DNA of 64,000 bases from Macrostomum lignano (lineage: Eukaryota): the NCBI GenBank assembly GCA_002269645.1, contig NIVC01000543.1, positions 481,795-545,794 on the forward strand. The letters are read 5' to 3'. The stretch's first letter is position 1; each line of letters opens with the position of its first letter. A program made the translations under genes and the position numbers. The notes under the pieces are model-generated. The model worked only from the letters and a program-made list of their open reading frames with translations, did no database searches and was not told where the DNA came from. Below, in pieces: positions 45,501 to 48,500 of the stretch.

Positions 45501-48500
45501 AATTTCAGATACTGGTCTTCACTGCGCAACCTCGTCATCTCTCTATTGAGCTCGATGAGGTCCATCATCTCCCTGTTGTTCCTGCTGTTCTTGTTCATCC
45601 TCATCTTTGCACTGCTCGGCATGCAGCTGTTTGGCGGAGAGTGAGTGCTGACGAATCGATTCTGCCCATTCTGCTCACTCCTGAGCACACACAAGCGCGC
45701 CAATACTGTACTCACGGCGAAACTCACGAAAACCCTCCAAGCCCCAAAAGGATGTGGCCCCGCACAGATTCGAAGCAGTGGTCAAGGTGCTCTGCCCCAT
45801 CACACTATGAGACTGCATCTTTAGAGTTGCGCACAAAAACCCGTTCCAGATTCAACTTCCCGGAAGGCCGGCCGGCTCAGAATTTCGACACATTCGTCAA
45901 AGGTCTGCTCACCGTGTTCCAGGTGAGCAGTTTGCTAGTTATTCATATTTGTACAGCTTGTCTACCAGCTAGGGATTTTTAGCGAGAGCCGATAGAGCGA
46001 GAGACTCAGCTGAGCAATATGTAGTACAATTGCACTTCCGTTCAAAAACACGTGCTGCGCAGATTCTGACCAGCGAAGACTGGAACACACAGATGCACTT
46101 TGGCATCCGCTCGCAGCGGGATGACGGCGGCGGCAACGGCATGTGGGCCGCCGTCTATTTTGTTATACTGCTCATCTTTGGCAGATGTATCCTTCGCTGC
46201 GTGCTAATCAATAAATTAGCGGGCTATGGAGGATTATCCCCATATTGATTCTCATAGAGCCGCCAAATACGCTCGTAAAAGCAGTTCCAACATGCGGCGA
46301 ATGGGCTGCTTGGCCAGTACGTGTCGTCCTGTCCTGTCTCCAGTGCACAAAAGTACAACCCCCCCCCTCCGAAAGGTGCCGTACGCTACAGTGATTTATT
46401 CATGTAATTTTACATCATTATGGCCTAATTTCTTGGCTGATGTTAAGAAATTATTTCCGGGCACTGAGTCATCCAGTTAAACTGTATAAACTGAGCACCC
46501 AGCCGTCTCAGTGTAAATATTAGCCAGAATGTTGTTGAGAGTATGGGTCAACGGCTCGGGCCTTGGTTTCTGGTCACTTACGAGTATCGTTATGATCATG
46601 TTGTTTGAGCTTTTTAAGAAAATGTGTACGCAATCCATCAACGTCGTTTGTTGAGCAAAACCCTTAAAGTACAAAAATCTTTTCAGGAAATAACTTTCGA
46701 TTTCAAACTGACGCAATGCACAACCGAATGCCGAACCCAATCCCACACAGATTCTCACGGGCGAAGACTGGAATCTCGTCATGTATTACGGGATTCGATC
46801 CCAGGGCGGCGTGGGCCGAGGCATGGCCTTCGCCACCTATTTTATCCTCCTAGTGCTGTTTGGCAACTGTATCCTTGGAGCCCAGTCTCGAATATTGCCT
46901 CGAATATTTGCTTATTTTGTTAATTTGCACTTGATTTGTTTTCCTTCATGCTGCATGTGACGCAATGCTTGCGTTGGACAGGTAAATGGCATGGTAAAGC
47001 AAGGTAGTCCCTCCTTTTCAATTTCGGTGAACGTTGTCGCACCTTACTTATTTATTAATTTGGCAAAGCTCTATCCGGTAACTGTATTCCTACACCACTG
47101 ATACTGTTGAGTACTGTACCCGCACCCCGCACTGCGTCATCAACTGCAATTTTCCTTAACCAAACGGCACCGCCGCAAAACTGCGACTTCTCGAAATCGA
47201 AAACGCAGACACGCTGCTCAACGTCTTCCTCGCTATCGCCGTGGACAATTTGGCAAATGCGCAGGAGCTCACCGCCATGGAGGAGCAGAAGGCCAACGAG
47301 GAGAGAGAGGTGAGCTTGTTGTACTTGCTATCTGGCTAGCACCATTCTTTATGCTCACTCCTGCTCACTCTCACCCATTCACTCTCACCCTGCTTCTCTC
47401 ACCCATTCACTCTCACCCTGCTTCTCTCACCCATTCACTCTCACCCTGCTTCTCTCACCCACTCAATCTCACCCCACCCACATATACCCACTCACTCTCA
47501 CCCTGCTTCTCTCACCCGCTCACTCTCACCCTGCTTCTCTCACCCATTCACTCTCAGCCCTCACTCACTCTCACCCACTCAATCTCACCCCACCCACATA
47601 TACCCACTCACTCTCACCCTGCTTCTCTCACCCGCTCACTCTCACCCCGCTCACTCTCACCCTGCTTCTCTCACCCATTCACTCTCAGCCCTCACTCACT
47701 CTCACCCCGCTCACTCTCCCCCGCTCACTCTCACCCGCACACTCTCACCCCTCACTCACTTTCACCCCGCTCTCTCTCACTCTGCTTTCTTTCCCCTTTA
47801 CTCACCCTGCACCCTAATTTAGTTTATAAAAATTTTCAATTTGTTTTTCGAAGCAATTTTCACAAAGTTTTTCCATACTTTCTTCTGCAATTACCATTGT
47901 CGTGGCTGCATTATGCTCAGCAAGTTTATGACGCATTGTAAACCAAGCAGCAGGCCATGCTTTTGCGGGAAAATAGGCAAGGCACAGTGAAAACCCCTCC
48001 GCCTGCCCAGGACTCGCCGCTCGCACAGTTGAGTCCAGGGAGGAAGAAATGCTTGCTTCTCTTGAAGTTGCTGCTATAAAAATGCAGGTTGAGCTCCGCC
48101 CGTGAGCTTCTGACGGCCCTTGGCCAAAATTTTCCAATCAATACCCGCTTCGCCTTGGCTAACCAGCTCCAGTGTTCTGGGACTTCTACCCCCCCCCCTC
48201 TGCTGCTGTGGTCCCCAGCGCAAACCTGCTCATTTTTCCTAGGGGGGGGGGTCTCTGCCAACTCACTGTGAGCTCAGCCAGCCAACCGTTAAAGTGCTCC
48301 GGCCATTTGCTTGCACCATTCGCTTTATGTGAGGTAGCTTTCTGTTTTGCTTGAACTGGGAGGCCTGCAGCCTGGGTGGGCTCCTGACTGGACTTATCGG
48401 CTGCCTGATATCCGCATTACAGCCTGGGGGTGGCTGCCGTGTGAGGCTTTTCAATTTCCCACATTCCGCTCCTTGACTGTGACGTCAGCTGAGTTGCAAA

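Follow-up and report, generated by a model that had tools for sequence, protein, structure and literature searches.

The Cav2 gene and its two pore exons

We analysed a 64-kb stretch of genomic DNA (contig NIVC01000543.1, positions 481,795 to 545,794), which is called the window below. Positions are those of the window unless another locus is named, and a slash within a splice-site sequence marks the boundary between exon and intron. The plus strand from ~34.1 kb to the window end carries part of a gene for a four-domain voltage-gated calcium channel (Cav), coding for the N-terminal two thirds of the protein. Its exon for the domain II pore is present in two tandem versions, A and B. Domains I to III show the Ion_trans architecture, and domain IV lies beyond the window. 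Each of these domains has a glutamate in its filter motif: TMEGW (I), T[G/S]EDW (II), and TGEGW (III). The AID motif, which binds the beta subunit, is present in the linker between domains I and II, and the Cav2-like sequence LANAQELT follows segment S6 of domain II (IIS6). The best 120 protein matches were all Cav2, type-A, cacophony, or N/P/Q/R-type channels with PF00520. By these features of domains I to III, the gene is classified as a Cav2-type (cacophony/CACNA1A-B-E-like) alpha-1 gene of a macrostomid flatworm. A 1003-amino-acid query assembled from the window exons was used for a full-length protein search. The best match was the Macrostomum lignano protein BOX15_Mlig012532g2 (P0239; 1733 bits), and the next was a Schistosoma protein (1491 bits). 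The M. lignano genomic locus of this protein (L006) was compared with the window. The alignment was confined to exons, at 75-91% nucleotide identity, and the introns could not be aligned. We infer that the window probably comes from a macrostomid lineage related to, yet distinct from, the M. lignano of L006.

The region of the two exons lies entirely on the plus strand. The upstream constitutive exon (45850-45922) codes for the S5-P turret and P1 helix and ends in ...TVFQ; its peptide is 100% identical in L006. Its donor, CAG/GTGAGC with GTGAGC at 45923, matches the U2 consensus MAG/GTRAGT at 8/9 positions and the U12 consensus RTATCCTT at 3/8. The U2-type intron that is removed when exon A is used (45923-46062, 140 nt) has a best U12 branch match of only 5/8. 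Alternative exon A (46063-46186, 124 nt, phase 0 to 1) follows the acceptor ...gctgcgcag; its product spans the TSEDW filter, P2 helix, and extracellular loop and reaches halfway into IIS6. It ends in GAT/GTATCCTT, with a U12-type 5' splice site at 46187-46194. The intron between A and B (46187-46750, 564 nt) is a hybrid: its 5' splice site is of the U12 type, and its 3' end is of the U2 type and lacks a U12 branch motif. Alternative exon B (46751-46868, 118 nt, phase 0 to 1) follows the acceptor ...cccacacag, contains the canonical TGEDW, like other Cav2 channels, and ends in ACT/GTATCCTT, with its U12-type 5' splice site at 46869-46876. Both donors are preceded by T and match the U12 consensus at 8/8 positions and the U2 consensus at 4/9. 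The U12 branch motif TTCCTTAAC lies at 47152-47160, with the predicted branch adenosine at 47159, and matches the branch 8-mer at 8/8. It is separated from the 3' splice site by a 48-nt spacer (47161-47208) without a pyrimidine tract and without an AG before the terminal AG at 47207-47208. The common downstream exon (47209-47309) codes for the remaining half of IIS6 and the beginning of the linker between domains II and III. The split codon, T from exon A or B and AC from the common exon, is read as tyrosine in both cases.

Splice-site types in the window

The initial annotation had placed both exons behind plain AG acceptors without a U12 branch, each ending in a U12 donor, at 46187 and 46869; this description and all its coordinates hold. 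When the best match to the U12 branch 8-mer TCCTTRAY was taken within 80 nt upstream, the acceptors of A and B scored 5/8 and that of the common exon 8/8. A U2-like branch sequence, CTGAC, is found ~37 nt before exon B. The donors of A and B have no AG at positions -2/-1, which fits U12-only GT-AG sites, since such donors are expected to lack it (PMC10853781). On both strands of the 64 kb, GTATCCTT occurs in only two copies, at the A and B donors. The degenerate motif RTATCCTT was found 5 times against 3.25 expected in the window, so its count is not above chance. What is non-random about GTATCCTT is its position: in two homologous exons it marks the same phase-1 boundary, which is orthologous to the U12 donor of other animals.

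The downstream TTCCTTAAC had also been described as the sole copy. This is correct for the A/B region but not for the whole window, as a second copy lies at 34641-34649. It belongs to another U12 intron of this gene (34395-34682, plus strand), an AT-AC intron before segment IS1 that runs from ATATCCTT through TTCCTTAAC to cac/G, with 34 nt between the branch and the 3' splice site. This D1S1 AT-AC intron is a known conserved intron of Cav and voltage-gated sodium (Nav) channels (PMC6259924).

The IIS6 U12 intron in other animals

Orthologous loci of eight species, M. lignano included, were compared at the exon boundary after FGN. A phase-1 donor T/GTATCCTT was found there in the marmot, scorpion, bryozoan, Schistosoma, Dicrocoelium, and M. 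lignano. The marmot CACNA1E reads TTT GGA AAC T/GTATCCTTTT, with TCCTTAAC ~12 nt before cag/AC ACA CTA CTG. The scorpion Centruroides and the bryozoan Bugula have T/GTATCCTTTT at this boundary, and Schistosoma mattheei and Dicrocoelium have T/GTATCCTTT, with the branch motif 13-20 nt from the AG. The intron is absent after FGN in a dragonfly and a shrimp. The preceding intron (TVFQ/ILTG) is U2-type in every compared locus, and the pore exon is single in all compared species but M. lignano. On this comparison, the phase-1 U12 GT-AG intron after LFGN is ancient and the duplication of the pore exon is young. Since the U12 intron is orthologous among these animals and the pore exon is single elsewhere, the ancestral order would have been U2 intron, pore exon, U12 intron. 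Conserved U12 introns of calcium and sodium channel genes were reportedly described by Wu and Krainer in 1999; the IIS6 position given here rests on our own locus comparisons. Animal CACNA1 genes typically carry two U12 introns (Lin 2010, PMC2831892; Fux 2018, PMC6259924), and each has its orthologue in the window. What differs is the flanking exon, which those genes have as one constitutive copy and the window as a duplicated pair. In the Cav2 gene of Bugula neritina a tandem duplication hits the S5-P turret exon ending in TVFQ (1917-1988 and 3127-3198 of its locus), and there the pore exon is single and the U12 donor is kept.

Conservation in M. lignano and selection on the two exons

The L006 locus has the same order of A- and B-type exons and the same splice-site types as the window. 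Its upstream exon ends at 18300 with the donor CAG/GTGGGA. The A-type exon (19271-19391) has the donor T/GTATCCTTTG and shares 27 of 41 amino acids with window exon A; the B-type exon (19786-19903) has the donor T/GTATCCTAGC and shares 37 of 39 with window exon B. The corresponding U12 donor 8-mers are GTATCCTT and GTATCCTA, respectively. A single TTCCTTAAC is found at L006 20991-20999, 31 nt before caag/AC. When the three introns of the window were compared by k-mers with their L006 counterparts, the only shared blocks were the donors and the 14-mer AATTTTCCTTAACC; the A-B intron shared no block of 11 nt or longer with its L006 counterpart. Because these are the only intronic blocks shared between introns that otherwise cannot be aligned, the U12 signals are under selection. 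The claim that the A-to-B intron joins a U12 donor to a U2-type 3' end was borne out at both loci, with a best U12 branch match of 5/8 in the window and 5-6/8 in L006.

The nonsynonymous (dN) and synonymous (dS) divergence and their ratio (omega) were estimated by the Nei-Gojobori method. Between the window and M. lignano, exon B gave a dN of 0.02, a dS of about 2, and an omega of 0.01, and exon A gave 0.28, 0.70, and 0.40, respectively. Between A and B within a species, dN was 0.34-0.37, dS 1.4-1.8, and omega about 0.22. Purifying selection acts on both exons. In the protein model of M. lignano (P0239), which reads ...TVFQ/...LLLFGN/YTLLNV..., the A-type exon is joined straight to the common exon and B is skipped. 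The M. lignano gene models of this series were built from assemblies of RNA sequencing (RNA-seq) data and not ab initio (PMC5730564). Since this RNA-seq-derived model uses the A-type exon, exon A is a real alternative exon, and in this model its U12 donor is spliced over exon B to the distal U12 acceptor, as exclusion by spliceosome incompatibility requires.

We considered whether window exon A is a decaying, unused duplicate, with exon B effectively constitutive. This pseudo-exon explanation gains some ground from the omega of A, which is far above that of B, and from two almost invariant positions that are altered in A, with Gly replaced by Ser beside the filter glutamate and Asn by Arg in FGN. 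In protein searches with short queries, which returned matches of comparable length at an identity of no more than 79%, none of the 238 short homologues was closer to A than to B. Nevertheless, although synonymous sites are saturated between A and B (dS 1.4), exon A has kept its open frame, its phase, its AG acceptor, and a perfect 8-mer U12 donor, and the transcript model of M. lignano contains its A-type orthologue. Residues specific to A are common to the window and M. lignano, namely the Ser beside the filter glutamate, SQR, GMWAA, and YFVILL. The dN from A to B is alike for the two A exons (0.34-0.36 in the window and 0.32-0.37 in M. lignano), so window exon A is not accelerated. We regard a decaying exon A as very improbable. 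The short queries had also suggested that exon A is an orphan, which was overturned when the 1003-amino-acid query found the A-type exon of M. lignano. Neither the exon A peptide nor a 35-nt DNA pattern from exon A gave a match in metagenome scans.

Spacing between the branch site and the 3' splice site

All four U12 introns of this lineage that were examined have a perfect TTCCTTAAC, and in all of them it lies far from the 3' splice site. In the window, the distance is 49 nt in the IIS6 GT-AG intron (from the branch adenosine at 47159 to 47208) and 34 nt in the D1S1 AT-AC intron (34641-34682). In M. lignano it is 31 nt in the IIS6 GT-AG intron (L006 20991-21029) and 30 nt in the D1S1 AT-AC intron (L006 5400-5437). 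The four introns form two orthologous pairs, which is too few to generalise. The literature optimum for U12 introns is 11-13 nt (PMC3584512), and in the same introns of other animals the branch is 12-20 nt from the 3' splice site. The single downstream TTCCTTAAC of the exon pair is perfect and conserved, and its spacing (window, 49 nt; M. lignano, 31 nt) falls outside the canonical 10-20 nt. The spacers of both GT-AG introns contain no AG ahead of the real 3' splice site. The 48-nt spacer of the window folds into two small hairpins (z = -2.7), and the spacer of the AT-AC intron shows no fold (z = 0.15). The hairpins might shorten the effective branch distance. A nearer cryptic U12 branch, TTCTCGAAA, 12-14 nt before 47208, was rejected as the main site, as its match is only 5/9. 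A similar sequence, TCTCGAAC, lies 14-15 nt before the 3' splice site of the AT-AC intron in M. lignano and was taken as a coincidence.

Such spacing could mean that the introns with GTATCCTT and TTCCTTAAC are vestigial, U12-like in appearance and now removed by the major spliceosome, in which case no incompatibility would exist. A distance of 30-49 nt is typical of U2 and not of U12 introns, the TTAAC core of the branch motif fits the U2 branch consensus, and vestigial U12-like introns that are spliced by the U2 machinery are known in Caenorhabditis elegans (PMC1557818). An intron spliced in this way would not need to keep U12 motifs; yet two introns have retained perfect 8-mer donors and 9-mer branch motifs in both species, between which intron sequence otherwise cannot be aligned. 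Agreement of the donors with the U1 consensus is limited to 4/9 positions, and flatworms possess U11, U12, U4atac, and U6atac, as found in schistosomes (PMC2770079). Removal of these introns by the major spliceosome is judged to be extremely unlikely.

Probable mutual exclusion by U2/U12 incompatibility

The arrangement can be explained by a single event. The ancestral exon would have lain between a U2 intron after TVFQ and a phase-1 U12 GT-AG intron after LFGN. A tandem duplication in the macrostomid lineage would then have copied the pore exon with its own U2 acceptor and U12 donor. The product would be a U2 donor, exon A and exon B, each between a U2 acceptor and a U12 donor, and a single U12 branch and acceptor before the common exon. 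Because an exon bordering a U12 intron was duplicated with its flanking splice sites, this layout, which is that of the JNK genes, would arise without further change. Two routes would be open to the transcript. In the first, the major spliceosome would join the upstream exon to A (140 nt), and the minor spliceosome would join A to the common exon (1022 nt, with exon B inside). In the second, the major spliceosome would join the upstream exon to B (828 nt, with exon A inside), and the minor spliceosome would join B to the common exon (340 nt). The intron from A to B should be removed by neither spliceosome, as its U12 5' splice site faces no U12 branch, and direct joining of the upstream and common exons would pair a U2 donor with a U12-type 3' region. 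Each mature mRNA should thus carry exactly one pore exon, and any leakage into products with both exons or neither would be frameshifted too.

In vertebrate JNK2, the hybrid intron with a U12 5' splice site and a U2 3' splice site 'cannot be properly spliced' and drives the exclusive use of exons 6a and 6b (PMC1874599). A hybrid intron with a U12 5' end and a U2-type 3' end enforces exclusive exon use in the vertebrate JNK genes as well in another account (PMC3584512). It is inferred that the incompatibility holds in flatworms as in vertebrates and would prevent the joining of A to B. The argument at the 5' side is strong, as the GTATCC donors are poor U1 substrates and no U12 branch is seen before exon B. 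At the 3' side, the argument against the skipped product is weaker. The skip route had been proposed to pair a U2 donor with a U12 3' region, and the layout agrees with this (an 8/9 U2 donor and an 8/8 branch); the incompatibility itself is less certain, given the weak U2 tracts and the U2-like branch distance. The candidate explanation of exclusivity by steric hindrance was ruled out by the length of the A-B intron (564 nt).

Several observations weigh against exclusion by incompatibility. The transcript evidence is one RNA-seq-derived model, from M. lignano and for the A form only. Window exon A ends in FGR, with Arg where nearly all Cav channels and M. lignano exon A have the Asn of FGN. 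The branch motif lies well beyond the 11-13 nt optimum. The pyrimidine tracts of the real U2 acceptors are as weak as that of the U12 acceptor (0.56 vs 0.48 pyrimidine), and, with a TTAAC core that suits a U2 branch, a U2-type use of the downstream acceptor could give the skipped product. The lengths of the exons, 124 and 118 nt, each leave a remainder of 1 modulo 3, so inclusion of both exons or double skipping shifts the frame, and exclusivity at the protein level needs no U12 argument. Finally, three other clusters of duplicated exons in the same gene have U2 sites only, which means that this lineage manages alternative exons without U12 sites.

The last two points lead to the explanation that the splice-site layout is incidental to the duplication, and that exclusivity comes from the frameshift with nonsense-mediated decay (NMD) or from other cis or trans regulators, such as RNA structures and splicing factors. 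It is in keeping with this explanation that the clusters in IS3-S4, IIS3-S4, and the domain III pore do without U12 sites, and that among human exclusive clusters frame incompatibility accounts for 60% and U2/U12 incompatibility for 0.8% (PMC5740500). On the other side, a hybrid intron with a U12 donor and a U2 acceptor is not spliceable (PMC1874599), so the block between A and B would exist whether or not it was selected. No docking- or selector-like intronic element is conserved between the window and M. lignano, and the U12 signals are the only conserved intronic signals. The frameshifted products with both exons or neither showed no stop codon within the next exon. NMD would be a second line of defence, which sequence analysis does not separate from incompatibility. 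We consider it unlikely that the frameshift or such regulators explain the exclusivity in place of the splice-site types.

Taken as a whole, the best explanation, to which we assign a probability of roughly 0.7, is that the Cav2 pore-exon pair arose by tandem duplication and is kept exclusive by U2/U12 incompatibility. It is supported by every structural test made at the sequence level except canonical branch spacing, and it is strengthened by orthology, cross-species conservation, and the transcript model. The incompatibility accounts for the exclusivity and not for the choice between A and B. It had been claimed that the mechanism decides which filter segment is used; we retain the part that exclusivity would be enforced by incompatibility, but the choice is not set by it, and the filter glutamate is present in both exons. 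The comparison of the window with L006 revealed no conserved regulatory element for the A/B choice. The window contains inverted repeats, 46695-46715 with 47182-47202, and TGACGCAATGC, present twice (46709-46719 and 46958-46968), with 47129-47139. In each, one arm lies just before exon B or at a site after it, and the other lies beside the U12 branch. No counterpart was found at the equivalent places of L006. Competing RNA structures of the docking/selector type were therefore rejected, as the repeats do not recur and no intronic k-mer beyond the U12 signals is shared; the repeats are probably due to chance.

Differences between the pores encoded by A and B

Exons A and B each encode the part of domain II from the selectivity filter to the first half of IIS6. 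The filter glutamate is present in both, as TSEDW in A and TGEDW in B. The residue before it is Ser in A, as opposed to the near-universal Gly; the TGEDW type was found in 236 of 238 homologous fragments. The P2 helix reads NTQMHF in A and NLVMYY in B, the extracellular loop of A is two residues longer and acidic, and the outer half of IIS6 differs between the two. Because both exons retain the filter glutamate, the swap is predicted to modulate the pore and gate and is not an E/K switch of ion class as in NALCN. The codon of the Ser beside the filter glutamate is AGC in both loci (window 46072-46074 and L006 19280-19282). A-to-I editing of its first base would restore Gly, which is speculation only. 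Two near-identical dipteran-like fragments (P0122 and P0129) also differ by G/S at this residue.

Comparison with known exclusive exons

The layout had been likened to that of JNK, and the comparison holds element by element: a U2 donor, two exons with a U2 3' side and a U12 donor, and one downstream U12 branch and acceptor. The nearest known counterpart is the pair of exons 6a and 6b of the vertebrate JNK genes (MAPK8/9/10; Chang et al. 2007, PMC1874599), in which the order is identical. There are several differences. The window exons belong to an ion-channel pore and not to a kinase, their duplication is independent and restricted to macrostomid flatworms, and their hybrid intron lacks the long conserved pyrimidine tract. 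The macrostomid U12 branch lies 31-49 nt from the 3' splice site, and the layout is known here from sequence. The JNK exons 6a and 6b with a U2-U12 hybrid intron were reportedly described by Letunic in 2002.

The human genome-wide survey of U2/U12-incompatible clusters lists MAPK8/9/10, MAPK14, CEP170, and CRTC1 (PMC5740500, Appendix Fig S18). In MAPK14, CEP170, and CRTC1, exclusive exons stand beside a U12 intron, as in the window (Hatje et al. 2017, PMC5740500, Appendix Fig S18). Unlike the window, these clusters have their U12 site at the 5' side, and none of the three is an ion channel. A parallel among invertebrate four-domain channels is NALCN, in which the tandem-duplicated exclusive exons 15a and 15b also swap a part of the domain II pore (PMC3557258). 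The NALCN exons change the filter residue (E vs K) and the ion class, whereas the window exons keep the Glu and differ in Gly/Ser, the P2 helix, the loop, and half of S6. No U12 involvement has been reported for NALCN, and its introns are not common to Cav/Nav channels (PMC3557258, PMC6259924). In the initial annotation, no ion-channel example of the mechanism was known, and our literature search agreed: it found no channel with U2/U12-incompatible exons and no U12-linked alternative Cav exons, although such an absence is not proof, and the known clusters were those of MAPK8/9/10/14, CEP170, and CRTC1. Tandem-duplicated exclusive exons of the domain II pore also occur in Lymnaea Cav3, as exons 12a and 12b.

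The Cav2 pair thus appears to be the first ion-channel example of U2/U12-incompatible exclusive exons. It is an independent origin of the known JNK arrangement in another gene family and phylum; it is predictable from the ancient U12 intron and adds no new principle. Only about six human clusters of this kind are documented, none in a channel, and the window presents a conserved second origin, in which the arrangement is automatic upon tandem duplication of an exon that borders an ancient Cav/Nav U12 intron. A broader proposal, for which we would not quite give even odds, is that macrostomids re-invented the JNK trick in the Cav2 pore. A strictly exclusive choice between an exon with Ser, an altered P2 helix, and a different half of S6 and the canonical exon would yield two channel types that differ in permeation or gating. 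Under the same proposal, branch sites at 30-49 nt from the 3' splice site, or two to four times as far as is regarded as permissible, would be in routine use by the minor spliceosome of this lineage. The long spacing of the four U12 introns bears on the rule by which the minor spliceosome selects 3' splice sites. For channel biologists, the exons offer a natural pair of variants of the domain II filter and IIS6. Transgenesis, RNA interference, and public RNA-seq data are available for M. lignano, which makes the mechanism testable in vivo.

Other exon clusters and neighbouring features

The three further clusters of the gene were mapped as follows. The IS3-S4 exon is duplicated (36357-36448 and 37578-37678) with U2-type sites (GTAAGT and GTACGG), and both copies are kept in M. 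lignano (L006 10062-10154 and 10753-10854). We take this pair to recall the IS4A/IS4B exons of Drosophila cacophony. The 113-nt IIS3-S4 exon is present in three tandem copies (42931-43043, 43646-43758, and 44799-44911), all with U2-type sites; the first copy has a GC donor (AG/GCAAGT). M. lignano has the first two copies only, so the third is specific to the lineage of the window. The domain III pore exon is duplicated at ~61391-61543 (153 nt) and ~61788-61931 (144 nt). The lengths of both copies are multiples of three, which leaves joint inclusion in frame, and M. lignano has the second type only.

An Rfam scan of the whole 64-kb window gave no match, and hence no small nuclear RNA or other RNA gene. 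A non-long-terminal-repeat (non-LTR) retrotransposon, with endonuclease, reverse transcriptase, and RNase H recognised by Pfam, lies at 49802-54237 on the minus strand, antisense within an intron in the region of the II-III linker. It explains a block of 58-60% GC, and (GTCT)n-type microsatellites flank it at ~49.3-49.6 kb and 55.3-55.6 kb. At the other end of the window, exons of MED12 (Mediator subunit 12) were found at 59-4231 on the minus strand (Pfam Med12 and Med12-LCEWAV), and long, coding-like tandem repeats lie between them.

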